Assembly: GCA_029953675.1 (NCBI GenBank) | Contig: JAMWBK010000012.1 | Location: forward strand, 992,001-1,056,000 | DNA from: Rhodosorus marinus CCMP1338 | Lineage: Eukaryota; Plantae; Rhodophyta | DNA length: 64,000 nucleotides | Direction: 5' to 3' | Part shown: positions 37,665 through 63,818 of the stretch, one piece after another | Position numbering within the stretch: position 1 is the first letter of the stretch | Layout: the number at the start of each line of letters is the position of its first letter | Position numbers and translations under genes: made by a program | Notes under the pieces: model-generated | Database searches by the model: none | What the model was told of the DNA's origin: nothing | The model's input: the letters and a program-made list of their open reading frames with translations, nothing else

Positions 37665-40600
37665 TTATAAGGTGCACATACAGAAACCTTCTGGATCTAA
37701 CCTCACAGTCTGGGGTTTTCATGCAGAAGAACAACATAATGGTCAGATGATCAGATAAGTGAAAAGCAAGGTAGGGACAATTCCCCCCGTAATTGATACG
37801 GTTGCCGTCGAGAAGAGCTCATCTGCTCTAAACACTTACAGCGCAACTTCTTTCCTTTCCCCAGTCCTCAAGCGCTTTGCATGTACCGGTCACTTTGTCG
37901 ATGCACTGGCCTTCAGGACAATCTAGACACCAGCAAGCCCCAGTGCTCTTTAGAATGAAAGGTGTCTATGGCGTGGATACAGTAGGTGATTAGAGGAAGG
38001 AGGTGGAAGAGGTCAGATACGTATTTGGATTGATTCAGGAAACTTTTTCGTATCGAGAGGAAATACATACCGCGTCGGGGTGGCAAAACAACTTGGCAAA
38101 CCTATCAAGAGTATCACAGGCCTTGGTCCTGAAATTAATGCAGGTGCTCTCATGGTCGCCGCAACACTGACACTTTCCTGGCTCATCTTCATCTAAGAAC
38201 ACGATACCTTGCTGTTTGCGTAAGGGTACATAGAAAACGTGATACCGTTCGCAGTTAGCTCTCAGGAAAGGACTTCATTTCTCTGTATTGTCTTCCTTAC
38301 CGGAAAACCGGGACAGGTGAGATGCACTGAGATGCCGGACGCAATTGGTTGACATTCACCATTCGGCGTGACGCAATTATCAACGGAATCACAACAGCGG
38401 CATTCATAATTTTGTTGTGAATCCGCGTAGGGATTCCCGCAGCCCGAACTTTTTTTGAAGTCCGCCAACTTGGTACACTGCCTTGGGGAAAAAAGCTCGC
38501 CAGGCAGGAAACAAGAGTCAGCGGACTCACCAGCAACTTTACAACAACCGCATTGACCACCGTCAGTGAATACTACCTGCTCTCATCACAAACAGCAGGT
38601 TCACGGAACATCTGAATGAGGTTACGGAGAGGGGTGCATGGAAAAATGCAAATAAGAATCGTTTGCTGAGTATTCTCACTTCAGAGCTGCTGCACGTAGT
38701 TGACGAGTACGCTGAAGTGCTGACACAGGTTGCATTGTCTATTCCACCGTCCAAGTTCACACAGTCGCTAGAGTCCGCCCCGCAGCACTCGCATTTTTCC
38801 GTGTTTTCATTCTTTACTGCAAGCTGGAAACGGCACAAGGGCGAATTTCGCGGTCAGTTTTAAACACATGGAATGTTGAGCAAAACGAAATTGTCCAAAA
38901 CTTACGACGTGTTGCGGGATTTTCGGCAAGCTCTCGCAGACTGCTTTTGCGCTATCTGATGACACTGACACGCAAGTGTTACTATCGTCCAGGCATTGAT
39001 CGGCTGGGCATCTAGAAACGCAATGGCAAAACCCATTCTCGTCCGGCGCACCGAGTGACGCACCGAGTTCTGAACCGCAAAACCCGGCAGCATACTTGTC
39101 ATTGTCAATGCATTGACCGAAAATGACGCACTGGTCCTCCCCAACCGCAGTTCTGCAGCATTCACAGTTGCCGGAAGCGTCGGCGTGCGGAAAAAGTCCG
39201 TTGCAGTTGGAACTCGAAAAAGCTTGGCGTGAGACGCATTGTTGATCAGCATTGACACAAGAATTTTCATTATCTCCAACACCTGGGCAACACTCGCAGG
39301 CTCCGGGGGCCGCCTTGGCAGGCGCGAACTGAAATAGAGGTAAGGCACCCAAAGTGTTATGTGAGTCGGAGTTCGTTTCTAGTCCTCCATGGGGCACAGG
39401 TCGGAGGATTCGGGGAAGGAAATCGAGGGAAGACCGCACAGGAAAATCCGTGAAGATTTTCAACTGCGAAATTCACGAATTGATTTCCGAAGTTGAGTGC
39501 ATGGAATTTGTCAAAGGCAGTCTTACCTGGCGCCCGAACGGATCGGCTGCTGCTTCGGCATCACAAGCTGTTTTCCTTTCTGCGGGTCCCACACACTTTT
39601 GCTGATCAGTGTCGAAGCAGTGGTCGGGAAGCGAGGCACAACACTGACATAGCCCTTCCGAGTCGGTAATAGCGGACTGTGTTAAGAGGAACCACCAAAC
39701 GAGTTCAGCAGGTCAGATCCTTCAGCAATCATCTGAGATACCCCAGACACGCCCACGCCATGACTGTCCCAGAAGAAGAAAGGGAGAATGATGTTGCTCG
39801 AAGATACTCACGGAAAATGTACAATCCGATCCGAAATCAGCTTCACTAATACACTTGATGCCGCCCGCATCCGAATCAACGGAGAAACATGAGCCTTGTG
39901 GACAGCAGGAACAACTGCCATGGTCGTCCTTGTACAAAAGTGAACCTGGCCCCCCCTACACAAAAATCATCGTAAAGCGGGAAATGGTTATTGAGCCAGG
40001 AGTGCACCCGTCAAAAGAGTCCAGTCGAGGATCAGTGTAGCCTACCGCATCGCAAAACGCAGAGGATTCGAGACTAAGGCATCCCTGGATTGGGTCAAAG
40101 CATTCGTTTTCTCCGCACGCCACCGCTTCACACTGACAAGAATTGTCAGATGGGTCTATGACGGCAACCTGAGAGGATGACGTAAACGTTTAGTTCATGT
40201 ACTTCCAGGTGTGTGACGAGCTTTGTGCGGGCATACCTCGGAGGAACTACATGATTGTGATTCAAAGTCTGAAACCTTTACGCAGCCGTTAGTCTCATCA
40301 ACGCATACATCAGTTTTGCTTGGGTCGCATCTACATCCACAAGCACCAGTATCGGGATCCTTAAACTCTTCCTGAAGAAAGAAGTGGTCCAATCATATTT
40401 TTATCAGAGGGTGCCCGCATTTGTGAAAGCGAACGGAGACTTTGGTCTTACCCCCAGGTCACCGCACGCATAATCGCTCGTTCTCACACACGTGCCGCTG
40501 TCATTGCATGCACTATTAGGGCAACTATCACAGGTCAGCTTCAAAGTGCAGAGAAACTCCTTTCGACCTCCTCCTATCCTCGTTTCGTCGCAGATGCCTT

Positions 40601-41171
40601 CGGTGGTCGTTTGAGGACTGATATATGCCTTTAGTTGTAGTTGCTCATCAACTTGGTTGGGTCCGTTGATGATGGCTCCGGGGGAAGAAACCACCGCAAA
40701 TCCGAGGAACTGGAGATCCGATCCGCAGCAAGGTATCTCTAGCACGGAGATTGCGCTCGGACAGAAGACAAGGCTGGCCTTGTGAACATGCGGTGAATTC
40801 AGACTGGCCACAGTTCGCTTGCGGGTATACCTCGACGATTTGCTGGTGATGGGGTCTCCTTTCTTGTGGACCCCTGCCCTCAGCTTCAATATTGATTCAT
40901 CCGTGCTGGGGACGGTGAACTTGGCGCGAAGGCACGTTCCTCCTGGTCTAGAGCTTGTAGGGGCTCTAACAATAGTTGAGATACAGACCTCCCCGTGTTT
41001 ACTATCAAGACGATCGATAAGATCAAAGCACGCACCCTCGTAACCAAACAGACCCTTCTTAGGGTCTGCGTCACATGTCGTGGCACCCGCCGTAAGCCTT
41101 AAAACGACCATGCTCAGCAGCACGAACGCTGCGAGTCGATGCATGTTTCCGACAAAGGCAGACGCAGACAT
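37665..41171 (-). CDS. Secreted Cys-rich modular protein (~808 aa, 11 exons): signal peptide, unassigned Cys domain and ~13 Cys modules
   Basis: Exons 41171-40452, 40371-40237, 40168-40046, 39955-39812, 39676-39527, 39328-38906, 38823-38680, 38576-38301, 38211-38071, 37965-37840, 37709-37665. All are multiples of 3 with GT-AG ends and no stops. Hydrophobic N-terminus MHRLAAFVLLSMVVLRLTAGA. Confidence 0.85.
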
Positions 41172-41277
41172 CTCGCGTAATCGATTACTGTTCTGCCCGA
41201 CACGTTCAGTCCACAGTTTGTAATCCGCTTTGCTTGCGCTGTACACGCGCACGCTGCTTCCCAGTACATGCGGACGC

Positions 41278-41288
41278 TTTATATATAC
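41278..41288 (-). promoter_or_regulatory. TATA box of the Cys-rich gene
   Basis: TATATATAAAG on the - strand about 110 bp upstream of the ATG. Confidence 0.55.
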
Positions 41289-42500
41289 TCGCCAAACTCA
41301 ATCGATTTGGTCTGCACAGACTGAAACCCATTGAGTCTCCGAATTAGCAGATTACAGATTCATGCTTCATTCATTCTCACCGGCTCGAGTTTGACAGACT
41401 ATGAGGGCGAACATAAAAAAGCAAACACTTTTTTCTTGTTCGACGGCAAGACGCTTGAGCCGCACCAAACCAACACAGGTGCCAATCACTTCTCACGTTG
41501 TGGATGTACATATCAAAATAAAAACCGCCGGAGGGCCCCACCCCTTATGTGTCAATGTCGCAGCACTGCTCTGAAGCTATCGCGCAATAATACTCAGACG
41601 ACCCCGCTCCCTTCTCCGTTCCCGTCCATCTAATTCTCAGCGAATGACGCGCCTCGGCGATACCCCTCTAAAATTGTCATGTGCTCGTTCATTAGTTGAT
41701 AATCATCAACGCAGTCGGGCCAATCTGAAAATTCGCCTATCGTCTTTGTCCATCCAAAGCTAGATTCTCTCCTAAGAATTCGGATCCGTACATTCAAGTG
41801 GCTTATGGCCCCCGCACTCAGAGAAAAACCAATCCACCGGTGGTTCTGAAATTTGCTCGACCTCAAATCTCATCCGACGGCCGCTCCGTGTACGATTCCA
41901 TCTGATTCCGGTAGAACATGAACTGTTCTGATTCTCGTTGGAGAACTCTTGGTTTGTTCTGCTAAGAAAAAAAAGGACCTATCGTTGAAGAAAAGAATGG
42001 CAAGAATTCCTGGAGCCGCAAATAGGCCTGAGGTAGGTCTGCTAGCTGGGTCGCCTTTGGTGAAAAAGCATCGCGTGCTTGAAACACTGTTCGTACCTAG
42101 CTATCGATGCTGTTCAAACCACCTCCTTACCAATCACGAACGTTCATTTAGTGTTTCAATACGAAAAGGAAATCTGCTTCCATATGAACTAAGGGTCGCC
42201 CGCTGAGCAGAGCGGACCGATTTCTCTAACCGACTTGTACAATGAGGATGGTCTTATTGTAGTAGTTGGTTAGCACGAGGGACTCTGAATCCGTAGACCC
42301 GAGTTCATCTCTCAGTAGGACCTCCCGCAACTTTCAGCGCTTCAGGCTTACATTGGTAGTATGTCCAGTAAAAACGCGTTGGAGAAATCGGTCCGCTCAC
42401 CGCATCGGGCCACCATTCGTTCGTATTGAAGAAGAAGATTTCGTTTTAATGTTGATTCACTAAATGACTATTCTCCTAATTGGCGAGTGGTCTGAAGAGC

Positions 42501-42762
42501 AACGATAGCCTGGTACGAATCGAACGAATGGTTTAATCGGAGGCTGAAAAAAAAAACCCCGAGGGGAAAAAAAGACTAAGCGCGGCGAAGTACTCGCGCC
42601 TCCAACATCAAAGCGGCATTCATGCGCCACAGCAGGAAACTTAAGCGGGTAAACAACGATTGAAGACGGTCAGGGCGTTCGCGGAACAACTCCCGAAGCC
42701 AGCGAGAACCAACAGAGTCCATGAACCCAAAGCACTCAAAAAACGATAGCCTGGTACGAATC
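42501..42762 (-). mobile_element. 220-bp 5'-truncated young family A retrocopy with a 21-bp target-site duplication
   Basis: aacgatagcctggtacgaatc at 42501-42521 and 42742-42762; the insert is near-identical to 51803-52020. Confidence 0.95.
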
Positions 42763-42980
42763 AGTGTTTCAAGCACGTGACGCAAGTTCTGGAACGGACT
42801 TTGTATAACATAATAAACCCATAGGATAAATCGGGCCGCTCCCTATAAATCATATGAGCAGGAAACAAAAGGTTTGGCTTGGAGTCTGCTAACAATGGAA
42901 GGATAAATTGATAGGCCCTTTCTCAAGTGCACCCTCCGACTTTCTGTGAATGTGACTCGCAACCAGAACACAGAGGGTTG

Positions 42981-43383
42981 TGTTGAAACTGGAAGTTCTG
43001 TAAGCGTTCTGGGCTCATAACCGGTTGAAACTGGAAGTTCTTACAGAGCTATAGGGACCCGTCGAGGCGCAAACACCGTACCCTTTTACTCGAGCCACCC
43101 CTCCGAGCACAGAGTGGCTTAGCAAAGAGCGGCTTAGCAGCTCCTATATATGGTTGTGCCAAGTGGGTCGGGTTTTTCGCTTGCGTACCCCTCTAAACCC
43201 CCCTGTTTTCGCGGGTTTAACTACTTCTGGGTCGTAAACAGCAAAAAACCCGTTCCCACTCGGCACCACCCTCACATATATGCTAGACTGCTCTGTGCAT
43301 TGTTACTAGATATAGGGGTAATTGGTTCTAATATAAGCTCTAGACTAGTATGAGGTGCCTAGATCACATATCGAGTTCCAACA
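42981..43383 (-). mobile_element. Copia-type LTR (43383-43023) with half-tRNAiMet PBS (43022-43009) and a duplicated LTR end (42981-42999)
   Basis: On the - strand: TGTTGG...TTTCAACC GGTTATGAGCCCAG aacgcttac AGAACTTCCAGTTTCAACA; TATATA near 43145. Confidence 0.8.
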
Positions 43384-43559
43384 AATTGGCCGGCGGAGAT
43401 GCAGATTCTGTATAATAATATTAAGAATATTGTTCAATCCTGAAGCAGTTTAGGTTTCTAAATGTTGATAAGGGTAGCCGGCTACGGCTACACCACAGGG
43501 GTAGCAACCTTACCGCAGTTGGGGAATTGTTCCGCGATCGCCGTGACCGTCTGTCCTCG

Positions 43560-44070
43560 TTGTTTACCAGTTTAAAAGTCTCTTGCTGTGGCGTATGAAC
43601 GCTGCCTTGATGTTGGAGGCACGCGATCTTCGCGGTTTAGTATTCTTTTTTTCCCGCTCAACTGTTTTTCTTTCAGTCTCCGATTAAACAGATTCATTCC
43701 GTAGGGGAAGATAATATCGGTTCCATGGTGGATAAGCACTATGCTAGTGTTGAAGGAGAACCGCCAATCGTAGTTCGAGGCTACGTTTGGCATGAGAGTA
43801 CTTACTGAATGCATTTGTGGCAAAGCCCGGGGGCGATGGCGCTCTTCGGCGAGCATGCTATCCCCAGAGAGCGACACTTTCCCGGGGTAGGAGTCCAAGA
43901 TATTCAACCAGGTGGTCAGTAAAACATTTCCGCAGCCACTCCAAGCCGAGCTTTTCCAGATGCCCAAAGCTTTCCACAATGAAATGCTGGAACCTGTGAG
44001 AACGGCCCTCCTGCGCGGGGGAGACTGGCCATGCTCTCAGCATTTCGTCGTTTCTTCAGTCGGCGAAGTA
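43560..44070. mobile_element. Old family A tail (+, 43560-43700) and family B fragment (-, 43790-44070)
   Basis: Tail cagtctccgattaaacagattcattc; the B fragment encodes EGRSHRFQHFIVESFGHLEKLGLEWLRKCF. Confidence 0.8.
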
Positions 44071-45074
44071 CAGAAGCTGCTGGCCCGCGGCCAAGAGCGG
44101 CTGAGAAAAAGGTGCGTCACCTGGCGTTCCCGAGTCATCCCCCAGGTCAGGACTCTCCAGGCCCGTTTGAGCTTAACTTCCGAGTTTGAGATAGAATCGG
44201 GTGCCTATGTTCGAGAGGTGTGAACATGACTCACAAATATGCTTGAGTATTGAAAATAGCATGGGGTGATGGTAATAAGGGGGAATTCGGCTGGAAGGGA
44301 TAACCGAACTAGAGAACTGAGGTCACCCCAAATATCCAAATATCATTTGGGAGGGGGAAGCTGGGAATGCCTTCGGGCATTGGAAATACCAGCTACAGAT
44401 GTTCTCCGACTCAAGGGAGTCGCGAACGTCCTGGTGGACGACAGTGGACAGTAAGGATTCAGTATACGTATATGTGGTATTAGCCAGGACTCCGGCTGGA
44501 CAAGCGCTGGATATCGTCATCGGTGCAGGAGAAAACCCGCGGCACAAGGGGAGTCCGAAAGAGGCACGATACGACGGCCGCTGAAAGCGAGGACTCCGTC
44601 GGCGAGAGACGACCTATTTTCTCCGTCGATGATCAACTATCATCCTCATCACGTTTCAGGGTTATATAGGGTTCAAGCCAAGGACCCTCAAGGCGCTCTA
44701 AAGCAATGCGAAAAGGCCCAGTCTAACGGCTATCGTCATTGTTCAGACCTCCTTCTTCGATAACAACGAACGTGCATTTACTTATTCAATCTTAAACGAA
44801 ATCTTTTGCTTCAATATGAAAGAATGGTTGCCCAATGTTGAGAGCGGACTAATTTCCAGGACTGACTTGCGGAAACACGCGATGCCATGTTGTCAAGTGC
44901 CACACCAGTGAAAAAACGGTTCCAAGCTTCTAGGAACAAAGGTGGACTTTCTCTTCCCGTTTGGGTTTTCGCGTTTACCGGCGGTACTACTGCTACTAAA
45001 TTCGAATTACCTGCCGATGGGACAACCCTAGAATAATGAGTGTGAGTGGGGTAAAAGCCACTCACACACACAGA

Positions 45075-46190
45075 TCTCGAAGTGCGCACCGCTCTGCGCT
45101 AATACCTCGGCTTGCATCAGTCGCTCTGGCCTTCCGAGATGGATTCGCCGTGCCCTCTAACCCCTCTATCTCTTAGAACGAAGGTACCGCGGATTTTGCC
45201 GCACACCTGCTCGCCAGCTGCCACGCTGTGAAAGGCGCCCGAACCCGACGACATACGCGGAACTTGAACCTGTTATACCGCGAACTTAGGACCTATCGTA
45301 CAGCAAGCCGGTCTTGAAGTTGAGTGTGAGAAGCCCCTGCCTGTCGCAGACTACCAGAATGATGAACGCCGCGTGGCTGACCTCGTGGTCACCTGTGACG
45401 ATAGGCGCTGTACGATTTACGTTGATCTTGCTCCGCCTAATCCTCAGGCTAGTCGCTATTTGCCGGCTGCAGGAGAGCGCCGTGGATTTGCCGCTGCAAG
45501 TATGAGACGTCGCAAAAGGTTGAAATATGCGGGTCCTTTGTCCTCCTCAGGGATTCGTGCTTCGGCTCTAGCTCGTCGCCTGGTGCCTCTGGTCATTGAG
45601 TGCTTTGGGTTTTCGGTTGTCTTTTTCGTTGGTTCTCGTTTGCTTCGGGAATTGTTCCACGAACGCCTCGACAGTCTGTCCAGTAGAACTAGCAAGTTCT
45701 TGCTGTGGTGTATGAACCCTGCTTTGATGTTGGAGGCGCGCGACCTTCGCCGCCCTTCGTCTTTTTTTTTCCGTCGGGTTGTTTTTTTCAGTCTCCGATT
45801 AAACAAATTCATGCAGAATAAACGCCCCTAACGCCCTGATCGTCTTACCTCATTGTTTACCCCTTTTCAGGTACTTGCTCTGGCTTATGAACGCTGCTTT
45901 GCCGCATGAATGCCGCTTTGATGTTGGAGGCGCGAGTACTTCGCCGCGCTTAGTCTTTTTTTCTGGGGTTTTTTTTTCAGCCTCCGATTAAACCATTCGT
46001 TCGTTCGGTGTTAGAGGCGAACGCGATATTCGCAGCGGATAGTCCTCTTTTTTTTCTCGGTTTTTTTTCTTTCACCTCCAAATTCATTCGATTTGGAGAA
46101 ACGCGCGATATACGGCGCAAATAGTCTTTTTTTTCTCTCCGGGTTTTTTGCTTTCAGTCTTCGATTGAACAAATTCATTGAGAATAATGA
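45075..46190 (+). mobile_element. Family A 3' portion (45075-45815) followed by a stack of family A 3' tails
   Basis: ADLVVTCDDRRCTIYVDLAPPNPQASRYLPAAGERRG...LMLEARDLRR; further tails end near 46006, 46090 and 46180. Confidence 0.85.
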
Positions 46191-46489
46191 AAATAAAAAA
46201 GCCAAAGACGGATGACCGATCCTCCACTCCTCCAATGCCTTTTTGGACAGTATTTTGTCAGGAAATACCGGCCTTTTTAGAACTGTTGCACTTTTTATTG
46301 GAATAAAAATGAGTAGATACAAGGCTGTTGAGGACGAAAAGCCGATCCGCACCTCCAACGGCACTTTTTTAGGGCGGGTCGGGTGCTCTTGAGATACTTG
46401 AGTATTTTGTGGAAAATCCAGTCGTGAAGAACGGAAAGAACGGACTGCTTTGTTAGTGGTGGTTTTACTGGGCTTTTTACTAACAGAGC

Positions 46490-47600: not shown

Positions 47601-47829
47601 GGTCAGGCCGAGCCAGCCCTGTGGACCTGTGGACTATGTCCTGCGGCCTTGAATTTTCTTATACATCCCGTAAGTGAGGTCCACTGGTTTCGTGGACCAA
47701 GTGCTCAGTCAGATAATGAAACGTCTCAATTTAATGATCTTGAACGAGAGGCGATGGGAGGCCGCCCCGGCGGGGGGGGGGGAGGTGTTTCGAAGAGCTT
47801 CATAGAACACAAAGTTCAACTAGACCGGT

Positions 47830-49379
47830 CTAGCTGCTATGTGAATACGTGATATCGACGTATCTACTGCAACTCGAAGAATCGCAAATGCGCGCTGTTC
47901 TTGTTCCAGAGAACGGCACTCCGAGGGAAGTTGTCCTCGTGGGGAGCAATCTATCATCCTGACCGTTGAAGAATCCATCCGAGTCCATAACTTCAATTCG
48001 CATGCTGATCCAAGAGCGATAACCAAAGAAGAGGTTCTTGTCCCAGTTTGGGTTGTGGTCGCCACCCTTTTCAGAAGTCCTTAGAGATAGGGACTTGCGG
48101 TCGATGTCGTAGGCGGAAACTCTAACGTACGGATCAGACTTCCTAGCAAAAAGGCCGTCCTTGTCTGGCAGGTTTCGCCCTCTTAGAACTCAGACTTGCA
48201 GGAGTCCAATGGCGCGCTCGCACCGTTCACCTGTGATACCTCGCCTGCAGATGCAAGTGAAGTCCGCGAGTCGGTCAACACAGGTATCCCCGTTCCGACA
48301 GGGGTTTGGTGCGCACTCGTTCCCATCTTCAATCAGCTCCGTGCGGAACGTTGCATATCTGGAACACGAAGTGGGAGCGCCGCAGGCGGTCCGTACCGAG
48401 CTTCCTCTGTAAAAGAGGGTCAGCTGTTCGTGCACGAGGACATCATGAGCACCCAGTAAATGGAATCATGACCTGAATTCGCAAGTATTGCCACTTTCCA
48501 AGCCCGAAATCAATCTTTTCGTTCCATGTCGGGGAGCTGTCGTTGCTAATCACTTTTGTGGTTCGAACTATGGAGTTTCCATCTGCATCCACAGCGGTTA
48601 CTCTCATGAACGGATCCGATTTAGCGAAGTGGAAGCAGCACGTGTCACGGTTGGGGAAGTTGTAGCCTGGAGAGCTGTGACTGCAAGCCGCCCGTCTTTT
48701 CCGTCATTCGGGCACTCATACATACGGTTGACGGTGAGAATGTCGAGGGAGGTCAGGTCTGTAGAACCTCCGATGGAGCCATTAGATATTCGCCTCAGCG
48801 TGTTCTGCCCGTTCTTGCTAAAGAAATCTTCCTCGTAGTGCATGATCGAAGCAAAGTCGTACCTAAGTCCCTGATGGTCAACGTTGTCCCAGGACTGCTT
48901 ATCGAAATTGTGTTCTTTTCCTGACTCAATGCTCTGCGAGAGTACTCTGACAAAGCTGTCTCTGTCTGGGCGCGACTGTTCATGGAAGAGACCAATACTG
49001 TGTCCAATTTCATGAAGCGCTATCGAGGAGGTGCTGCTGAATCCGTCGTGGCATATTGGACCCAAGTTGATCTTCTGGCGTCCTCAGCGACGTCCGACGT
49101 CGCTTGAATAGCAGAGACTGTTGTCGCTCTCGAACACTATCCTGTCGTCCGCATGTCTTGACTCGAAAAACCTTAGGCAAGTCGCGCTTTCATACCTGTC
49201 CATAGCGTTCCGGACATTTGTCCTCGTATGTAGTGGGACACCATTGTCGAACTCATCGTCGACCCTCCGAGAATGCCACCTCTTGCCCTTGTCCCGGATC
49301 GATCCGTTCTAGCTGCCCAACCGGCGATCGAAACCAGGAGCACCAGGGTCAATACGAACTTTGAGTTGGGTTGCATCAT
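47830..49379 (-). pseudogene. Intronless secreted metalloprotease pseudogene: signal peptide, astacin (M12A), C2, EGF, C2
   Basis: HEIGHSIGLFHEQSRPDRD and Met-turn SIMHY; C2 KSDPFMRVTAVDADG..PTWNEKIDFG; [37 protein letters not shown]; second C2 NLPDKDG..SDPYVRV..NPNW..VMDSD. About three frameshifts and two in-frame TGA. Confidence 0.88.
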
Positions 49380-50094: not shown

Positions 50095-50308
50095 TCGGAC
50101 GTCGCTGAGGCCGCGAGAAGATCAACTTGGGTCCAATATGCCACGACGGATTCAGCAGCACCTCCTCGATAGCGCTTCATGAAATTGGACACAGTATTGG
50201 TCTCTTCGATGAACAGTCGCGCCCAGACAGAGACAGCTTTGTCAGAGTACTCTCGCAGAACATTGAGTCAGGAAAAGAACGCAACTTCGATAAGCAGTCC
50301 TGGGACAA
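50095..50308 (+). repeat. 214-bp inverted duplicate of the astacin active-site region (partner 48884-49097)
   Basis: Near-identical reverse complement, including the premature TGA; third Zn ligand changed H to D (GLFDEQ). Confidence 0.92.
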
Positions 50309-50455
50309 GCGCAACCTCTTTTCAAGAGCGCTCGACGACATTCGAAATTCGCGGGCCCATGCACCACCCCCAACACGTTCAATACGGTCAGCAGCTTAGC
50401 ATCTCTTCTCCTCAAATGGATGACACACTTCCGCGGAGAGCGATGTAGTTAACCC

Positions 50456-51745: not shown

Positions 51746-51801
51746 GTACCCTCTCCGATCGGACCCGACCTCGCCACAGGATATGGCAGTATATCAGTAC
51801 T

Positions 51802-53031
51802 ACGAACGAATGGTTTAATCGGAGGCTGAAAAAAAAACCCCGAGGGGAAAAAAAGACTAAGCGCGGCGAAGTACTCGCGCCTCCAACATCAAAGCGGCAT
51901 TCATGCGCCACAGCAGGAAACTTAAGCGGGTAAACAACGATTGAAGACGGTCAGGGCGTTCGCGGAACAACTCCCGAAGCCAGCGAGAACCAACAGAGTC
52001 CGTGAACCCAAAGCACTCAATGATCAGGGGTACCAAGCGATGTGCTAATGCCGAAGCACGAACACCAGGGGAAGACAAAGCCCCCGCGTATTTGATCTCT
52101 TTGCGGCGTCTCATGCTGGTGGCGGCAGATCCACGGCGCTCCCCCGCAGCCGGGAGATAACGACTAGCTTGAGGGTTAGGAACAGCAAGATCAACGTATG
52201 TGGTACGGCGGCTGTCGTCACAGGTGATCACCAGGTCGGCTACACGGCGTTCATCATTTTGAAAGTCCGCGACGGGTAAAGGTTTCTCACGTTCGATTTC
52301 CAGACCGGCTTGCCGGACTATAGGCCGAAGTTCCCGGTATAACAGGTTCAAGATCCGTGTGTGGCGGCGGGTTCGAGCACCTTTCACCGCCGGGCAACTA
52401 GCGAGCAGGTGGGCGCCAAAATCTGCGTTGTCTTCAGTCTGAGAGCAGAGAGGGCACGACGAACCCATCTCGTACGGCCAAGGGGGCTGATGTAAGCCGA
52501 GGTATAAGCGCAGTGAAGTACGCACTTCGAAATCCGACAGTGTGAGTGGCGGAAAGGCTGGTACGGTCATGAGCCACTGAGAGCTAATAACCCCTCCAAG
52601 ACTACGTAGGCGGGCGCGAGCGCGAGAAGATGAGACCATCTGCGCGAGGAGTCGGCCATATGCAGCACGGTGCAAGTCCCAAGAAAGGATATTTTGCAGC
52701 GCATCCGTGCGTGCTTGAGCTCGGCTCCCAGCGCGCTGGGAATCATCAGGAGGATCAACTGGAACTTCTTCTTCTGCGGCAACCACTGGGTCAATCTCCC
52801 CTAGAACAGGTTCAGGCGCAGGACGAATCCCCGGGGCGGAGCCTCGAGAGCGGTCAAATACAGCTCGCCAGTCAGGAAGACGGGGTTGAACGGTTTCGGG
52901 GAGACTAGTACAGGAATTCAGGGCGGTTTGGAGCTCCAGAAACAAGTCTTGGGCGCTTTCCGGTACGCTGGGAAGCAAGACACCCCGCGAGAGGCTCGCC
53001 ATCAAATTGCGGAACTTCGAGATACCCAAGC
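51802..53031 (-). mobile_element. Young 1.23-kb 5'-truncated family A CRE-like element (RT C-terminus, CCHC knuckle, RLE) with an 11-bp TSD
   Basis: Uninterrupted ORF with CPLC..GAHLLASC (CCHC), RRHTRI, RRVADL, YVDLAVPNP, RRKEIKY, PLIIECFG; TSD atatcagtact at 51791-51801 and 53032-53042; (TTCG) tail. Confidence 0.93.
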
Positions 53032-54200: not shown

Positions 54201-54229
54201 ACTGGTGGTTTTGACGGCATTATTAGCAT

Positions 54230-55124
54230 AGCGTAAAGCGCTACGCAAATCGTTAAAAGGAACTAAGAACTAGGTAGGGAAGCGGGCAAACCCAGGCGCC
54301 GATGGCGCGCCTCAGCAAACATGCTGCTCGAATATCGCCACAGAGAGACACTTAAACGCCGTAAAAGTTCCAAGTGTTCAACAGGATGCTCAGTGAAACA
54401 TTTCCGCAACCACTCCAAACCCGCCTTCTCCACATGACCAAAGCTCTCCACAATGAAAGGCTGGAATCGGTGGGAGCGACCCTTCAGCGCGAGGCAGACT
54501 GGCCATACTCTCAGCATACCGTCGTTCCTTCACGCGGCGAAGGGCCGAAGCAGCTGCTCCCCGGCGGCGGGCGGCAGCCATGAGATGGGCGCTTGCCACA
54601 GGGCATGTAATCGCGAGGTCAACATATGCTGAGCGTCTAGCGGGAGCATCGGAGGCGAGGAGATCTGCGAAACAACGGGGCGGTGCCCTATCCGAGACCG
54701 ATCTGGGTAGTTCCGATTCCAACTCAACCCTGGTGGCTTTAATAATATAGCCTGATGCGCTACGTAAAACGTAAAAGGAAACTAGGGGCTAGGAAGAAGA
54801 GCATGTAAGCCCAGGCGACGGTGGCGCGCCGCGGCGAGCATAGTGCCAGACTACCGAAAGAGTGCGATACTTAAACGGAGGAGGAGCACCCCTTGTAGAT
54901 CTTGTCCACGGTCCACCATCATTTTGTCCTCAGCGCGTTCACTCGAGCTCTATTGGGCTAGGAAGAAGAGCATGTAAGCCCAGGCGACGGTGGCGCGCCT
55001 CGGCGAGCATGGTGCCTGACTACCGACAGAGTGCGATACTTAAACGGCGGAGGAGCACCCCTTGTAGAACTTGTCCGCGGTCCACCATCATTTTGTCCTC
55101 ACCGCGTTCACCGTAGCTCTATTG
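54230..55124 (-). mobile_element. Family B copies (54230-54722; 54750-55124, including a 169-bp tandem duplication)
   Basis: FADLL..AYVDLAITCP..AARRRGAAASALRRVKERRY; units 54787-54955 and 54956-55124 are near-identical. Confidence 0.85.
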
Positions 55125-55135
55125 CAGGTCGAAAT

Positions 55136-55235
55136 CTGGGCTCATAACCATTGAGCGAGTTTGAGCCAGACCATCTATCCTTTTATCTTGGTTCTTACTC
55201 ATTAGTGATCTCGCACTATCTGAGCTATTCGAACA
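55136..55235 (-). mobile_element. Short LTR-like segment (55235-55150) with a perfect half-tRNAiMet PBS (55149-55136)
   Basis: On the - strand: TGTTCGAATAGC...CTCAAT GGTTATGAGCCCAG. Confidence 0.6.
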
Positions 55236-55699
55236 CCTGGGTGGTCTGTTGAGGGTTTATGGTGTTGGCTTGGGTGAGTTTTAGGTTATCAGAGTGTTTG
55301 TTCGTAGGAGGCGCTGCCTTCCTTTGTCTTTCCCCGTGGCTTTTTGGGTGTGCGGCTTGTCGGCCGGCTTTCTCTCCTTTTCTTGGGGTTGTGATCGAGG
55401 TTTCGGGGTGCTTTGTAATGGGTATTAGCCAGTTTTTGCGGGCTTTTGTGATGAAAATTCTTCTAACCACTCCCTTTTGTGATGGCTGGGGTTTCCCCAC
55501 CTCTTCTGGTGGTCGGCGATGCCGTCTATCCGCTGCATTCAGCACCCAGGCCACTCTCAGCAACTGCGACAAAGCATCGTCGAACGTACTCGTCTTAAAA
55601 CTGACCAGATATCTCATCGTTGCTTCGCAGGAGAACCGCCTGCCCTCGCTAACGGCGTACCTGGAGAAATTTCCTACTAACGCGCGTGCCTCTGTCCTC

Positions 55700-58580
55700 C
55701 CCCCCCCTGATTCTGGGGGGAGCTCTAGACCCGCCCTGCCTTCGGTCGTCCGTCGCGGTCCGCCCCGATCATCCCTCCTAATTCTGCTGTGCCCTTCCAT
55801 GCCTCCGGCCAAAACCCCCCTGGGCTTTCCTTGGGGCCGAATCTTGCCCCTGCGAGTGTCACTCGGCCCTCCTATTCCCAAGTCCTTCGTCGGGGCTCCT
55901 CTGAAGAACGCACGACGGCCATGCCCCTCCATGCCTCCGGCCAAAACCCCCCTGGGCTTTCCTTGGGGCCGAATCTTGCCCCTGCGAGTGTCACTCGGCC
56001 CTCCTATTCCCAAGTCCTTCGTCGGGGCTCCTCTGAAGAACGCACGACGGCCATGCCCCTCCATGCCTCCGGCCAAAACCCCCCTGGGCTTGCCTTGGGG
56101 CCGAATCTTGCCCCTGCGAGTGTCACTCGGCCCTCCTATTCCGAAGTCCTTCGTCGGGGCTCCTCTGAAGAACGCACGCCGGCCATGGTGTGTGTGATGC
56201 CTTCCCCCGTGGCGACCGCGCCCGTAAAATACCGTGATTTCCGCGATACGATGGCCTCCTCACTTGGGGTCGCACCATCTGAGTTCCCCTATGCGTATTT
56301 CACTGGATCTTATGCCTGTTTCCTTGTCACAGAGTCTGCTTATCAATTCCTCACCTCGCTCGTCGCCACCCCTGAGCCTCAGCGCTCTGCCCTTGCAAAC
56401 ATGATACTGACTCGTGCCCACGTCTCATTGTTTGTTGAGTTTGACCGCTTCGACGCAGGTTGGGTTCCCCAGTCGGCGCTGCAGAGCCTCCCTTCCACGC
56501 AAGCTCCTGATATCGCGCTGCAAACTCATGCGGCGCGACTTTCACACCTCCAGTCGCTCTTTGCCCGTTTCATCCCCCGTGGTGTCCTGCGCTCGGCGTT
56601 AGAGAACTTCTTCTCCGCTGAGGCCGCTCTGATGGAAGCTCATCTGGCCTTCGACCTCTCGCAAGCCGACTCCTGGCCGCACCTTCTCCCCTCCTCGGGC
56701 AGCTGCAGTTCCTGATGCCGACATGTCGGCAGGCCCCTAGTGCTCCCCGAATCCGCTGGCTTTGGACACCCTCAGCGAAGACTCCGTTCCTGACAATCCT
56801 GTATCTGCCTTCTTTATTTCCTTTAGTTCCTTCGCTCGTCCGCCACGGAAGCGCCGCCGCCTGAGAAACCCTCAGAGGGCCCCCCACCGGATACCCGCAA
56901 CGCCTCCCCGACTGAGGGGAGGCATGATGTCTTGAGTCCTCTACCCCCGCCCGTGTGTCACCCGTGTCCGTCCTGTTCGCCGATGCCCTCTCCACCTGGC
57001 GCGAGCGTCTTTTCTCGTGGTTCTCTGACCTTGTGGCTTCCTTAACGGTGGTGTTATTCCTTTTTGCCGTCAGAGCCCAGCTGTACGGCTCCCTCGTCGT
57101 CTTCTCAAGCCTCCCGCGATGGTTTTGGACTTTTTATGGCAGGAAGTTTCCAATCACCCTCAATGCTCTCTTCGCTGGGATATCCTTTTCTTTTTCCCTC
57201 GCCTCGATCTCACTTCCTCTACTCTCTCGAGCCCTTCACCTCCCCGCCGTATCCACCCTCGGCGCAAGATGCATTTGTTCCTCTCAGGTGACTTTGCAGA
57301 GCTCGAACGTCTCGACTTTGCTTCCCTCTCTTCCTTCTCTACGTGTTCCCCTTCAGATCTAGTCGCCAACAACGGGCGCGTCACGCTATGGCGGTGATCT
57401 CCGGAGGGCTGCCAGTGTCCTCCAGGAACGGCAACCTGTGGTCGAGTATTCTGACGATCTTGAACCTCCGCTACGCTCGTTTTTCCATGCAGCAGGCTCT
57501 GGGTGGGACCCGTCTTTTGACCGGTTCTGGAAGCGTTCCAAGTAGCGTCCAATGAAGGTGAGCGGCTGGTGGTCACCTCGGAGGCTGTGTGTGAGCTGAT
57601 CCAGAAGTGCTCTAAAGGGTTGTTCTCCTGGGCCCCCGGGTTTGCGGGTGGAATACCTCTTTTTTTGGGGGTGGGACGGTATGAAAGCGTTCGCGTCCAG
57701 GTTGGAGGGAATCGTCAACGGCGATCCTTTTTGTGATCGCGCATGGTTTTTGCTGGGACGGACGCAGCTATGTTTGCTCTCCAAAGCGGGTCACACTGCT
57801 TCGACTCCAGCCCTTCGCCCTAGGGGCTTGGTGGGAGTGGCTTGGTGGGAGTGGTCCGTAAACTGGCAGCTCGATGGTTGGTCCAGATTTTGGTCCCCGA
57901 ATCCCGTCGCTTTTTGGACACGCGCAGTTGGGCGTGGGCTACCGTGGCGTCTGTGAATTGCTATCCGTACTTCTTCGCTCGGATCTAGCCTACTCACCGG
58001 ATTACAAGTTATTATCCGTAGACTTTAGTAATGCTTTTAATCGTGTCTCTCGACCGGCCATTATGAATGTGGTGCGCCAGGTCTCCCGGTTAGCTTTTCC
58101 TTTTTTTCGTAGCCTTTACTATTTGATGGGCCATGGGCCAACTCGTGACACCCTCGGCCCTTCCTCGCACTCCTTTGAGGCGCTTACCGGGGTTCAACAG
58201 CGTGACCCGTTGGTGCACTTTTTGCAGGCCTGTGGGCTTCAGGTCGTCGCTTAACCTGCGCTCAGAGTTCCCGGAGGTCCTCACAATGGGTTACGACCAT
58301 CTCCGCACAATGGCATCCCTCGTCTATCTCGAAGTCAATCATGCGAAGTCGCTCTACTGAGGAGGAGCGGATATTCAAGAGCAGCAGGTCCCCCCGCGTA
58401 TCCGGGATATTTGGCATTGGGAAAGGTTTGTCCACCTGGACATCTCCTATGGGTCCGCGTCGTTCGTGGAGGGTGAGTTGTCGCAGATTCTGAGTAAGCA
58501 CCGCCAGCTGGTCTCGGAGCTCCGTCGGCTGCCTCGCGGGGTTTTTTCTTTCAGCCTCCGATTAAATAAATAATTCATTC
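55700..58580 (+). mobile_element. Internally deleted, decayed CRE/SLACS-clade element (5' region, RT and family A tail)
   Basis: RT motifs QLGVG, VDFSNAFNRVSR, GVQQ(R)DPL and LEVNHAKS; the RT joins directly to the tail gggttttttctttcagcctccgattaaa at 58538. Confidence 0.85.
55789..56184 (+). repeat. 3 x 132-bp (44-aa) tandem repeat in the CRE 5' ORF
   Basis: atgcctccggcc at 55799, 55931 and 56063; unit MPLHASGQNPPGLSLGPNLAPASVTRPSYSQVLRRGSSEERTTA. Confidence 0.95.
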
Positions 58581-59044
58581 AGGCACTGAGCTACTACCAC
58601 CTTGGGTCATTCATTCAGTATCTGCAGTGAGAAGCTGCCACCAATTTCTCCCCAAAAGAAAATTGGTCGTAAAAACTCTGAAAAACGGATCCCATCATTT
58701 GTATAAAAGAAAACTTATTATTGAGCAACATTTGGATTGGATTGATTCAGTGGATAACAATTGGTTAATTGGTAGTTGTTACTCCTCATGATTGGGTGAA
58801 TATTTTAGAACTCTTCAGTACACCTTAGTACATTATTGTATAGTTTGATGATCCCCTTTTTTGCACTAATAATTTGATACTTTGGAAATTCTATTTTTTT
58901 CAAGTATGGATTTTAATAATTTCAATTGTTATTTTGGTCAACTGGCGAAAAACTGTTTTGCCACTTCCCTTCGCGATCGTTCGGGATCATACTTTGGGAT
59001 CATACTTTGGGAAGTTGGTGAGGTGCAATCGAGTGCCTCATGAG

Positions 59045-59540
59045 CGTGACGATATTGTGGTACTGGTTTGAGGGGACTGCTCCCTACCTCCGCCGGATAG
59101 ATTATGGAGTTGGTACCTTGCGGGACGTGCTGATAGGAAAAACAGAAGATATGAAAGATTTTTTTCTTAGCTTCGTGTGACAAGTAGGTCTAGTAAGTGC
59201 TTCCATGGATGTGTTCAACGGTTTTGGTAAGCGGCTTAAGACCGTCTGCCGAGTGGCAAGGAGGTAGAGTTTTCGTATCCGGTTCGTTTCACAAATTTGG
59301 AGGTTGTTCGCTGGAGTGCATTTTCAGCGTGACGATGTAGTGGTCTGGTTTGAGGGGACACTCCCCGCGTACGCCATGTCGATCATGGACTCGATGCCTG
59401 CGGGACGTGCTGATACAAAAAGAAGGGATATCTAAGACTCGACCACGTCTGATAAGTGCCTCGATGGATACGTTGAAGGGTTGTGGTAGGCGTTTTGCTG
59501 GCTGCCGAGTGGCAAAGAGGATGAGTTTTCCTGCTGATGT
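59045..59540. repeat. Diverged ~283-bp tandem duplication
   Basis: cgtgacgat..tggtttgaggggac, tgcgggacgtgctgata and ctgccgagtggcaa..gagtttt each occur twice at about 270-283-bp spacing. Confidence 0.8.
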
Positions 59541-61913
59541 CGCGCTTAGTGGAAAGAGTATACTTCAAAACATGAGCATACTTTTCACTGGAAGTTTTTC
59601 GCATCGGTCCAATGCCCTTTGCTTTCGGAATTGGCTCAAATTTCGCGAGCTTGTAAGAAGATCCTGGTAGGCAATTGGGACCTGGGGATGGAGCGTCATA
59701 TTCTGTCTGGATAGTCGGGTGCGACTTTAAGGGGGGGGAGGGTGGTAAGGATGCGAAGGGCTCCCGCATATCTGTCGTTTACAGAAAGTTCCGGAATGGT
59801 GGTTAATGCAAAAGGTCGCGTAGCGAAAAATTCATTGCAGTTTTACACCCCGCGAGCATATTGTTGTAGATATTGGGGTCCATAAATCCACCACGAGTAC
59901 TTCGCGCTCGGAGGACGGGATTCCGGTGGCTGGTAGTGAACGCCACCCCGCAGAGCAAGATTCAACATAATAAGTTGAATTCATCTGCTCTACCACGTTT
60001 CAACCACCGAGGGGTGCTGCCATGCGGGACCCTGTCCTACGGATACCGCCACCACCACATGAGAATCCGAACTCAGCCAGTTGGTTTACAATTTGTCAGT
60101 TCTAGAAACACCAGTCCGTAAGGCCTTCACTCACGCCTTGACATATCCCAATGAGTACACGTTGAGCACGACTCTGTTCGGCTCGTGGGTCCCCCGCTCT
60201 CCAACGGGGGAGTCTGTTGTTGAATCCAAAACCCTTGAGCAAAAATACTTGTGCACAACATACCAGTGGAGAGCAGTTGTCTCGATGATTGTTGAGCATA
60301 CACACCCCGCCCGGGACCTCTCCTTGCGATACCGCCTGCACACCAATGATCGTTCGCCGAAGCACCATCGTTGCACAGAACAAAAACCATTTGCGGGGAA
60401 AAATTGATCAATCCGACGAGAAAAAAAGTCTCCGGAACGGAAGTTCATGAAATTACGTAATAATTAAACATAAAATTAGAGCAATCGGCGACTAGTTTCG
60501 TGTCCGATCCAAAGCGTCTCGGACGGAATAAAAAGGACAAAAAAAAAAAAAGTTCTTTATTTGTTCGTCCGAGAACATCGGTCCGATAACGACATATCGG
60601 CGTCCGATATTCCTCATTCAATCAGAAAACAGTGCTTGATGCTCAATCTTCTTCATCTCAGAGGTGGTCTTAATTCAAAATCAAGAGACAGCTTGTCATA
60701 CCGAGAAGTAATTATTATTCAATATCTGGATGGGAGATGATTGATTATTTGACACATGCGTTGATTGATTGAGTAGGGGGGACGTTTTAAATCGGACGAC
60801 CAACAAGACGGGTTTTTTTGAAGGAATTTCAAAACATACGTTAATTCATTTACTTTTTGTATTTTTGTTCTATAGTCTATCCACGAATGAGAATTTATCC
60901 GATAGTTTACGACAGTCTGGTATCTGGTCACAATCATCACCTTCTTATGATAATTTTCAAGATCTTCCAAAGCCCTCCTCCAACTCCTCCTGCTCCTTAA
61001 AAAAAAAATAGTTTTCAACCGATCTTCAAGCGGCTTGTTTTTGGTGGATCCCTTACATGAATTATTCTATATTTTGATCCGCGCGCAAACGTCAGCTCCG
61101 ATCGTGATTTTCTACGATTTCACGATGCACCGAATCAATTTCCCAATACTTTTTGATGCAAATCTCGAGATTGTTACCAAAATATCTGATTTTTTTAAAA
61201 ATACTACTTTTGTCAAGCCAAAAATCAAAAAATAAAATAAAAATTGCAGTTTCCTGAAATGAAGCCTCGTTTTCTTAAACTTTTTCTTTTTTGTCAACCA
61301 ACCAATCCCAACTACCCCTATACCTAAACTGTAAAAATCAAACAGGTAGAATATTATTTATAAATGATAAATGGAATTCGACCGATCCTCTCCACCCCTC
61401 ACTCAGTCTATACAACAGCAGCATTTCATATTGGTTCTGGGACTTTGTTAGTAGCTTACGACTTTCGCAGTCATACGAAGAATGTTTGATAAAGGAGAGA
61501 TCACTATTCGAAGAGAAGGGATGTGGTCTGCCGGAGGAAACATACAAAGTTCCAGCAGCCCCCAACTCAGAAACCAGCAAGGAGCGTTGTTCGTTCCGGC
61601 ACCCCCAAGAGGTGCAAACAACTTGGATTGTGGTCAGTTCAACCAACTCCCTGTTCCCTCCCCCTGGCACTGGAGCAACGGTCAACGGTCTGGAGCGTTT
61701 TGCTGTTTAGTGTTTAGCTCCCAAGGCGACAAAGGAAATGAACTCTTAGGTAAGATTTGGCTAACATCGTTTTCGACAGAACCCATGTTGGTTAGAACGT
61801 AAAGAAAAACAGAGAATGATAAGCATGTGACCATTAGAACGGAGGACGAAAAGGAGACCACGGGGAGGGGGGGGAAAGGAGGGAATGAGGACCTCCGTCC
61901 ATATTGGGGTTTC

Positions 61914-62380
61914 GTTCCCAACAGGCCTTTGGAATCGATCCAATTCGATCAACTTTGATCGAGGCTACTGGACTCAGTAAAATCACTGCTGGATCCTTCG
62001 GTTTGGATAGTATGCTTAACCTGCAGGATGTCCCCTGGGCTCTCCGGTGGATGTTTGTGTGGGTCATCGCTTGGTTTCGCTAAGGAGAAAATATCAACGG
62101 TTTGTCGCGACTAGGGAAACCCCGCGTGACGGACGAGGATAAATTTTGTTCCCAACAGCCCTTAGGAATCGATCCAATTCGATCAACTTTGATCGTGGCT
62201 ACTGGACGCAGTAAAATCACTACTGGATCCTTCGGTTTTGATAGTATGCTTGACCGGCAGGATGTCCCCTGGGCTCTCCGGTGGATGTTTGTGTGGGTCA
62301 TAGCTTGGTTTCGCTAAGGAGAAAATATCAACGGTTTGTCGCGACTTCGGAAACCCCGGGTGACGGACGGGTATAAATAC
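61914..62380 (+). promoter_or_regulatory. 234-bp-period tandem duplication ending at the TATA box (TATAAAT, 62372) of the RTX gene
   Basis: Copies 61914-62135 and 62148-62369 are near-identical; copy 1 is followed by ggataaatt, copy 2 by ggtataaata. Confidence 0.8.
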
Positions 62381-62483
62381 GTCCGCGGATGTGGTGGGCC
62401 GAGCACTAGTTCGTCGCACTTCAGCGTCGGCATTGAGTGTGCGCGAGTGGCTTTTTTGGCAGGCTGTTCTCGAAGGTCTCAAG

Positions 62484-63818
62484 ATGGACAATTCTCAAAT
62501 TCGATACGTCGTTCTGATGCTCATAGTCGCTGCATGCGCGAGCGGAGTTAAGCTTGGCGATGGGAAACCGATGCTGGCGGTCAGGCCACCGGGTAGTACT
62601 GTGTGCGACGCGGAGCTGCTGCCAACGCAGTTCGTAAAGGATTTCCAGGAGACATGCTTCCCTCTACTCGACATTGATCAGCGCGAGCTTGGGACCATGT
62701 GCACGTCTACGATGGACACGGGCTCGAAGAAATGTGTGCGGGTCAGATTTACTGCTATTACAAGCAACTTGAGGAGCTTGAAGGTAGGCATCTACCAGGA
62801 CTGCAACATGGTCCCAGACAATAATCCGTTCACCCACATCAAAACAGCATCGGGCTCAACAAAAACAAAGTCGGTGACCATTTGCCCCGATGAGATCGAA
62901 GCAAATACGAACTGCTGCGAAGCCAATCTCTGCATGGCGGCAGAGGGATCAGTGAAGAAGCGGGGCGCAGTCTTAAAGGTCAGACCAGGCGAGGGCTGCT
63001 CCACGGGTACAAGCGGCAACGGAAACGGACGTATTTGTCCCCTTATGTTGAACTGCGTGAACGTAGTTACTGGCACAAACGGAGCTGACATCCTGATGGG
63101 GACGAACTACGTTGACTACATCTACGGGTTGGGTGGAAATGATACCATCGACTCGTATGCAGGAAACGATGTAATCTTTGCGGGAAGCGGCGATGACTAC
63201 GTTAATGCCGGATTCGGAAACGACAAGGTTTACGGGGAAGACGGGGATGATTACGTTTACGGCGACAACGGTGATGACTACATATCAGGTGGAGATGGCA
63301 TGGACAACCTTAGCGGCGGCAATGGGGATGACGAGATTAAAGGCGGTAAAGACGAGGACGATATATTTGGTGGAAATGGAGATGACAATCTGCTAGGTGG
63401 AGACGACGATGATTTCATCCAGGGAGGAGCTGGCAACGATCGCATCCGCGGATACGACGGTAACGACCTACTGCGTGGCAACCATGGGGACGACAATTTG
63501 GGCGGTGGCTCCGGCGATGATTACATGCAGGCCGGTTATGGAAATGACGTGGTGAACGGAAATTCCGGGGACGACGGCATTTACGATTACTACGGTAATG
63601 ACATTCTCAAGGGCGGAGGCGACAACGACAACATCGCAGACTTTTTCGGAGACAACTTCGTCGACGGCGGTGGGGGTAATGATATCATCAATACCGGAGA
63701 TGGCGATGACGAAATCCTCGGTAAGGAAGGCGACGATGATATTACGAGCGGTGGAGGGTTTGACGTTATTGATCCAGGACCGGGAAACGATACTGTCGAC
63801 GGCGTACCAAATCTTTAA
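62484..63818 (+). CDS. Secreted protein (444 aa): signal peptide, unassigned Cys domain and 27 RTX (GGxGxDxLx) Ca2+-binding nonapeptides; intronless
   Basis: ATG 62484 MDNSQIRYVVLMLIVAACASG; uninterrupted 9-residue repeats from GTNGADILM to PGPGNDTVD. Confidence 0.92.
   Translation: MDNSQIRYVVLMLIVAACASGVKLGDGKPMLAVRPPGSTVCDAELLPTQFVKDFQETCFPLLDIDQRELGTMCTSTMDTGSKKCVRVRFTAITSNLRSLKVGIYQDCNMVPDNNPFTHIKTASGSTKTKSVTICPDEIEANTNCCEANLCMAAEGSVKKRGAVLKVRPGEGCSTGTSGNGNGRICPLMLNCVNVVTGTNGADILMGTNYVDYIYGLGGNDTIDSYAGNDVIFAGSGDDYVNAGFGNDKVYGEDGDDYVYGDNGDDYISGGDGMDNLSGGNGDDEIKGGKDEDDIFGGNGDDNLLGGDDDDFIQGGAGNDRIRGYDGNDLLRGNHGDDNLGGGSGDDYMQAGYGNDVVNGNSGDDGIYDYYGNDILKGGGDNDNIADFFGDNFVDGGGGNDIINTGDGDDEILGKEGDDDITSGGGFDVIDPGPGNDTVDGVPNL

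Follow-up and report, generated by a model that had tools for sequence, protein, structure and literature searches.

The extracellular mosaic proteins of animals combine EGF-, TSP- and laminin-type disulfide modules through phase-compatible exon duplication, and the repeat regions of bacterial RTX proteins need millimolar Ca2+ to fold. Bacterial fibrillar and RTX adhesins, such as MpIBP of Marinomonas primoryensis (PMC5550230; surveyed in PMC8286594), are modular extracellular proteins in which a binding domain is joined to a repetitive, Ca2+-stiffened extender and to RTX nonapeptides. Their RTX region is C-terminal and linked to type I secretion, Ig-like repeats make up the stalk, and retention in the outer membrane is due to an N-terminal module (PMC8286594). 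The repeats of bacterial RTX proteins fold only when loaded with Ca2+ (for example PMC5618222, PMC13224072). Here we describe a 64,000-nucleotide stretch of nuclear DNA (the window) from Rhodosorus marinus (assembly GCA_029953675.1, contig JAMWBK010000012.1 of 1.16 Mb, positions ~992001-1056000), in which two genes, referred to as A and B, encode proteins with related N-terminal head domains, as judged by sequence comparison, on two different repeat stalks. R. marinus is a unicellular marine red alga of the Stylonematophyceae.

A preliminary description of this DNA had aligned the two heads by eye and had named pairwise alignment statistics as one way to check the match. All the motif strings on which it relied are present, those of gene A in the exon-1 open reading frame (ORF) at window positions 40404-41252 (-) and those of gene B in the ORF at 62391-63818 (+), and its coordinates were exact, 40452 being the 3' end of gene A exon 1 and 63060 the base that directly follows the gene B head. 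In BLASTP the two proteins were 25% identical over 142 aa (E 7e-7). The Smith-Waterman score of the head pair was 98, against 30.9 +/- 5.2 for 2000 shuffles (z 12.8, Gumbel p 2e-8), so that the comparison chosen beforehand was significant, though with the cysteines masked the head pair alone was not (p 0.056). The match seen by eye therefore rests largely on colinear cysteines. A hidden Markov model (HMM) of 18 heads, none of them linked to RTX, scored the gene B head at 71 bits (E 1.2e-20), when the best of 2000 shuffles reached 10.5 bits; the reverse profile found gene A at E 3.4e-17, and hhalign gave 99.4% probability (E 5e-22). With a 25-sequence profile both heads aligned over the full domain (E 8e-51 for gene A, 1e-41 for gene B); this profile includes genes A and B themselves, and the independent test is that made with the separate 18-head and reverse profiles. 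The homology of the two heads is solid, and the proposal of a shared head stands. A profile scan finds exactly two heads in the window, in genes 21 kb apart. We define the head family by a signal peptide followed by a domain of ~155-185 aa with K-L-R-x-G and I-C-P-x-x-I blocks and conserved cysteines at gene A positions 3, 50, 107, 118, 119, 164, 178 and 184; both genes fit this definition.

The two heads are followed by different stalks, as had been proposed, and each stalk type recurs in other members. In gene B, PF00353 (HemolysinCabind) is matched in 7 stretches with 129 bits against a cut-off of 23 (E 5.2e-38), and 18 distinct nonapeptide motif matches (canonical GGxGxDxUx) were located by regular expression between aa 233 and 439. 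Bacterial-type RTX proteins match this region in large numbers (2419 at E<=1e-10, with 29-52% identity), and none of the best 120 matches carries the head. Gene B is present verbatim in GCA_029953675.1, at record positions 1054484-1055818. The combination of head and RTX is transcribed, since P0035, a transcript from MMETSP, runs colinear with gene B and shares 40% identity with it. The stalks of both genes are strongly acidic (isoelectric point, pI, ~4.1-4.2).

The stalk of gene A consists of Cys modules of ~40 aa with six cysteines each, of which 13 were counted with the pattern C-x-C-x0-3-C-x3-9-C-x5-9-C-x8-12-C and 12 of these 13 were also found with a module HMM, all within gene A. A first unit with 5 Cys closes exon 1 (40526-40452), 12 full six-Cys modules occupy exons 2-10 and a truncated unit lies in exon 11. 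The modules are arranged 1-3 per exon between phase-0 introns; all 10 introns are GT-AG, in phase 0, and 68-198 nt long. The 595-aa stalk matched no Pfam family at E<=10, and a PDB search with the Cys-module profile returned nothing at E<=10. An EGF-like identity does not fit, as CxC(C) opens the module whereas EGF spacing has C-x-C between Cys 4 and 5. The deposited model of gene A (P0002, 696 aa, window 38563-41171) has the same introns 1-4 and 6 as our 11-exon model; it differs in an exon 6 acceptor placed further upstream and in reading through intron 7 to a stop. Exons 8-11, absent from P0002, each encode further modules and are backed by nucleotide conservation with a paralogous locus, L001, and by module HMM matches. 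At L001 (10001-14700, +), the paralogue NDN08_004882 has a deposited model (P0001, 243 aa) that itself appears truncated: its exon 2 acceptor is out of frame, and an acceptor 30 nt upstream would keep one Cys module in frame. The module HMM has 15 matches at this locus, mostly downstream and including a tandemly duplicated block of ~1 kb. The coordinates of genes A and B, and of a further gene considered below, are collected in the table.

Table. Features of genes A and B and of an astacin-type gene lying between them (window coordinates).
Feature	Position	Strand	Description
Gene A (NDN08_005008)	37665-41144	-	11-exon model, 799 aa; from open frames and splice contexts
Gene A signal peptide	41082-41144	-	MHRLAAFVLLSMVVLRLTAGA, cleavage expected before TTCDAD; read by eye
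Gene A head	40527-41081	-	aa 22-206, ~185 aa, 10 Cys
Gene A Cys-module stalk	37665-40526	-	acidic, pI ~4.2
Gene A exons 1-6	41144-40452, 40371-40237, 40168-40046, 39955-39812, 39676-39527, 39328-38906	-	
Gene A exons 7-11	38823-38680, 38576-38301, 38211-38071, 37965-37840, 37709-37665	-	
Gene B	62484-63818	+	single exon, 444 aa + stop
Gene B signal peptide	62484-62546	+	MDNSQIRYVVLMLIVAACASG, cleavage expected before VKLG; read by eye
Gene B linker	62547-62597	+	17 aa
Gene B head	62598-63059	+	aa 39-192, 12 Cys including extra pair C69/C112 (head numbering)
Gene B RTX region	63060-63815	+	aa 193-444, 252 aa, Gly/Asp-rich nonapeptides, pI 4.05, no Cys
Astacin-type gene, signal-peptide ORF	49173-49379	-	
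Astacin-type gene, ORF with HEIGHSIGLFHE	48604-49065	-	PF01400 match, E 3e-33
Astacin-type gene, EGF-like Cys exon	48190-48435	-	

Relatives of the two heads were sought by running a three-head profile with HMMER exhaustively against 1.84 billion representatives. Of 32 matches at E<=1e-3, 27 were accepted as true relatives, that is, as signal-peptide proteins with the same head domain; the family detected numbers ~27 clusters at 50% identity. The remaining candidates (P0022, P0023, P0025, P0029 and P0033) were rejected as long repeat proteins whose E-values are sums of many stretches of 3-10 bits. Every true relative with a source name comes from R. marinus, either from the genome (NDN08 tags) or from MMETSP/EukProt transcripts, in agreement with the lineage-specific family that had been suggested. 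Word-indexed protein searches with the 2-head or 25-head alignments returned P0001 only; the word index misses the head family. Four architectures occur: the head alone, which accounts for many small secreted members; the head with one or many Cys modules; the head with RTX (gene B, P0010/P0035 and P0031); and a head-RTX-head-RTX arrangement in P0004 (NDN08_004411), encoded by one continuous ORF of 2079 nt (L003 6001-8079, +, contig JAMWBK010000007.1), in which the second head lacks a signal peptide. All members with names are either called hypothetical protein or bear inconsistent automatic labels: in UniRef, P0007, P0016, P0017 and P0028 are named in four ways that have nothing in common (carboxypeptidase regulatory-like, DOMON, EGF-like and membrane-associated). 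Pfam scans of the P0007, P0016 and P0017 heads did not reproduce the first three names, and the gene A stalk did not bear out the EGF-like label of P0017. Searches of the literature yielded no account of the head family or of red-algal RTX proteins; a study that reports on Stylonematophyceae genomes (PMC10250338) has mitochondrial minicircles, not this family, as its subject.

Members of the family are clustered in a repeat-rich region, with at least 10 of the 17 traced genome-annotated members located on contig JAMWBK010000012.1. In the order of NDN08 tags gene A is 005008, and gene B presumably carries the intervening tag before NDN08_005010 (P0032), so that three consecutive annotated genes appear to be family members. 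P0032 lies ~11 kb past the end of the window (equivalent to ~75.1-77.8 kb, minus strand; L004 10001-12613) and is a single-exon gene for 870 aa, with a head, one degenerate Cys module and a tail of ~600 aa that has no Pfam family on record and ends in acidic DFADGVEDAAN repeats. Heads occur as neighbouring pairs elsewhere too: at L001 a second head gene (4725-5540, -, 262 aa, profile E 3e-47) lies 4.5 kb upstream of NDN08_004882 and is divergent from it. The preliminary description had spoken of a system; genes A and B are, together with P0032, clustered paralogues, and nothing suggests that they work jointly. The window and L001, 650 kb off on the same contig, have interspersed repeats in common at 98-99% identity. 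Those at 42515-42739, 51800-52495 and 54216-54729, with others, are 93-99.5% identical to the L001 locus, and older shared copies are 72-85% identical. By their sequence, the repeats surrounding family members look like recently active mobile elements; their larger ORFs gave no Pfam matches.

The proteins look secreted, as had also been claimed. Both begin with a signal peptide; that of gene A opens with a short basic stretch, continues with a hydrophobic core and has A-x-A at -3/-1, and the same leader is found in the paralogues P0001 and P0003. The number of cysteines in the heads is even, and in the 25-head alignment cysteines are gained or lost strictly in pairs, with four pairs co-varying: C18/C33 (gene A) are both present in 13 sequences and both absent in 12, C50/C107 are lost together in 3, C3/C118 are lost together in 1, and C69/C112 (gene B head) are found only in 7 sequences, the type-B heads. 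This co-variation is good evidence for a disulfide-bonded and therefore extracellular head, in which four pairs can be assigned and two more would form among C119, C164, C178 and C184. Together with the RTX region, these features suggest that the family is most likely extracellular. A glycosylphosphatidylinositol (GPI) anchor was considered and rejected, the tail of the L001 paralogue (…TTRLLLSASAGF) being too short and gene A ending in …CMCTL.

We favour the following reading, at a probability of roughly 60%. Genes A and B are paralogues of a fast-evolving secreted family, detected only in R. marinus. Their products would enter the secretory pathway by way of the signal peptides, and 5 (gene A) or 6 (gene B) disulfides would form there in the head. 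Since RTX repeats fold only with Ca2+, the RTX region of gene B would fold into a beta-roll outside the cell, only upon meeting Ca2+ at the ~10 mM found in sea water. In gene A, the Cys modules would form a long, acidic, disulfide-stiffened rod. The ligand of the head may be some component of the mucilage or surface of the algal cell itself, or else of a partner surface; the acidic stalk may serve as a spacer or cross-linker in the extracellular matrix. As to origins, the Cys stalk would have been enlarged through exon duplication, and RTX, with a bacterial-type RTX gene as its most likely source, would have been joined a single time to one lineage of heads, in a fusion that was later duplicated, also giving rise to the head-RTX-head-RTX gene.

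Several points weigh against this reading. The signal peptides of genes A and B were judged by eye, and neither protein shows a C-terminal membrane span or a credible GPI signal, so that the adhesin-like design of the preliminary description has no evident anchor and attachment to the cell is unexplained. The restriction to Rhodosorus rests on the 3-sequence profile, as the 25-sequence profile was run only in word-indexed form, with 1 match. The pI of the heads ranges from 4.5 to 9.6, which argues against a single shared charge-based ligand, and the cysteines are the only invariant residues, which leaves no binding site to point to. That the RTX part came from bacteria cannot be proved by similarity, which the repeat consensus saturates at ~40-50%. 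Finally, a neighbor-joining tree does not place all type-B heads in a single clade, P0032 intruding among them. A conserved basic strand, R-[FY]-T-[RK]-[RK]-[RK], in heads of the Cys-stalk type was considered as making the head a binder of sulfated polysaccharide; in view of the pI range of the heads, this was not adopted for the family as a whole.

A less likely alternative is that the head is no new domain but belongs, in strongly diverged form, to a beta-sandwich superfamily already described (DOMON/CBM9-like, C2-like, GM2-activator/ML-like or carboxypeptidase-regulatory-like), with the usual binding of sugar, lipid or haem. The UniRef labels of P0016 (DOMON domain-containing) and P0007 (carboxypeptidase regulatory-like) point this way, as does a weak summed match, in the exhaustive search, to the unnamed 2118-aa repeat protein P0023, which however amounts to only ~8 bits per repeat. 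Pfam gave no match for the heads of genes A and B and, for 25 heads at E<=10, no recurrent family, DOMON and carboxypeptidase-regulatory included; a PDB sequence search with the 25-sequence head profile gave no match at E<=10. An AlphaFold2 model of the gene A head, built from the 25-sequence alignment, is confident (mean predicted local distance difference test score, pLDDT, 88.1; predicted template modelling score, pTM, 0.84) and shows 11 beta strands and essentially no helix, an all-beta fold that is probably a sandwich. An earlier model from 3 sequences (pLDDT 60) was set aside together with its Foldseek output. The weak top Foldseek matches of the pLDDT-88 model are beta-sandwiches, among them the putative carbohydrate-binding 4iyk, the Jagged C2 domain and GM2 activator, as this alternative would have it; no PDB entry matched at E<=1e-3, however, and the best template modelling (TM) score was 0.34, with a root-mean-square deviation above 8 A. 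The sole structural neighbour at E<=1e-3 was a protein of Pithovirus LCPAC001 in BFVD (A0A481Z1W0; E 1.1e-4, TM 0.51 over 164 columns), an uncharacterised 559-aa protein with a predicted structure, 9% identity to the gene A head and no functional information. The check by AlphaFold and Foldseek thus yields a confident all-beta model with no PDB neighbour at that threshold, and the head stays, as first described, unassigned to a known domain.

Alternatively, the family could consist of secreted effectors of interaction or defence, directed at bacteria, grazers or pathogens, with the head as the recognition or active part and its diversity the outcome of an arms race. We consider this rather unlikely. 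Lineage-specific expansion in a repeat-rich region, the apparently recent activity of the nearby repeats (98-99% identity), the many head-only small secreted proteins and the variable charge of the heads would all suit such a role. So would rapid evolution: between the gene A head and its closest paralogue, NDN08_004882, the ratio of non-synonymous to synonymous substitution (dN/dS) is 0.50 at a dS of 0.56, by which the head is constrained yet fast-evolving. A dN/dS below 1 over the whole head, however, does not show positive selection, Pfam scans detect no toxin-like, pore-forming or enzymatic region, and long acidic stalks are found more typically in proteins of matrices or surfaces.

A further question is whether stalks have been exchanged repeatedly between heads, so that head lineage and stalk type are uncoupled; the preliminary description had called the stalks interchangeable and had invoked domain shuffling. 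The three stalk states (none, Cys, RTX) are indeed scattered through the family, the phase-0 module exons suit shuffling, and the neighbor-joining tree puts P0032, with its Cys module and large C-terminal region, and the stalk-less P0015 beside the RTX-linked P0031. Repeated exchange nevertheless seems improbable to us. The extra Cys pair is present in all five RTX-linked heads and in none of the 18 others, RTX is carried by no head outside the five, and the junction …NC[VI]N[VIL][VI]xGTxGxDxLxGTxxVDYIYG… is common to all five. In the tree, which is otherwise weakly resolved, a clade of four of the five has 95% bootstrap support, and loss or truncated models account more simply for stalk-less type-B heads. 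The shared Cys pair, the single junction, the 95% clade and the absence of the head from the 120 best bacterial RTX matches point to one fusion followed by duplication, not to free exchange of stalks; judging from these sequences, the head-RTX fusion probably arose once, and the stalks are not freely interchangeable. Shuffling fits one part of the family: the structure of the Cys stalk, with its modules 1-3 per exon between phase-0 introns, fits growth by exon duplication, whereas the head-RTX join contains no intron. Finally, that the likeness of the heads reflects chance or convergent Cys spacing, or that gene B is a bacterial contaminant or an annotation chimera, is already refuted: the Cys-masked p of 0.056 and the overwhelmingly bacterial occurrence of RTX repeats would speak for it, but the best shuffles reach no more than 10-11 bits where independent profiles give E 1e-20 and 3e-17, and gene B shares its 1.16-Mb contig with the intron-bearing gene A, lies among algal repeats that recur at L001, and is one continuous ORF with a colinear paralogue known as a transcript.

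A bolder reading, which we consider less likely than not, is that the head is a truly new fold, confined to one small lineage of unicellular red algae, and that one head lineage captured a bacterial RTX region and re-routed it through the secretory pathway, the product being a Ca2+-switched extracellular protein that folds only in sea water. If true, a eukaryote would here have put a hallmark of bacterial type I secretion to new use, beside a home-grown six-Cys module without known relatives.

Two other features of the neighbourhood may be mentioned. Between genes A and B, at window ~48190-49379 (-), there is a gene for an astacin-type metalloprotease that is apparently unannotated, the deposited annotation calling no gene at this place, and a near-identical inverted fragment of its catalytic exon lies at 50127-50399 (+). 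Downstream of gene A, the deposited annotation has two 98-aa genes 1 kb apart (32318-32614 and 33671-33967, -), with no Pfam family on record.

The extracellular matrices of red algae are poorly known at the protein level. The analysis defines a new domain family with testable disulfide pairs and a confident predicted fold without a solved neighbour, and a second, likewise unassigned, Cys module; several public gene models of the head family are shown to be truncated. Gene B is a clear case of a bacterial-type RTX region behind a eukaryotic signal peptide, and its small product, predicted to be Ca2+-switchable, can be compared with the bacterial RTX proteins. Concrete experiments can now ask how the surface of a unicellular marine alga is built or decorated.

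Among described systems, the nearest concept is that of the bacterial fibrillar or RTX adhesin, exemplified by MpIBP, which is likewise modular and extracellular, unites a binding domain with a repetitive Ca2+-stiffened extender and RTX nonapeptides, and comes, like the R. marinus proteins, from a marine setting. The features that define these adhesins, namely type I secretion, an Ig-like extender and an N-terminal retention module, do not fit gene B: it belongs to the nuclear genome of a eukaryote, and its product has a signal peptide at the N-terminus, an unrelated disulfide-rich head, RTX as its only stalk and no evident anchor. Pfam finds PF00353 only; the head is N-terminal and there is no Ig-like extender of the LapA/MpIBP type. 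Type I secretion uses an uncleaved C-terminal signal and supposes a bacterial genome, whereas gene B is nuclear, lies on an algal contig and carries an N-terminal signal peptide. Its C-terminal 252 aa resemble the RTX/HemolysinCabind family (PF00353) at large, with ~40-50% identity to thousands of bacterial proteins; in contrast to these, the region has no type I secretion context and no bacterial operon, and is fused to an alga-specific head. Gene A in turn resembles the mosaic proteins of animals in that its N-terminal globular domain is followed by tandem six-Cys modules of ~40 aa, with 1-3 of these in each exon and all introns in phase 0; it differs from them in a Cys pattern that opens with CxC(C) and in having no Pfam or PDB match. 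We rate genes A and B as members of a lineage-specific mosaic family of secreted proteins in which the head domain and the Cys module are both new and RTX repeats are put to an unusual use in a eukaryote.

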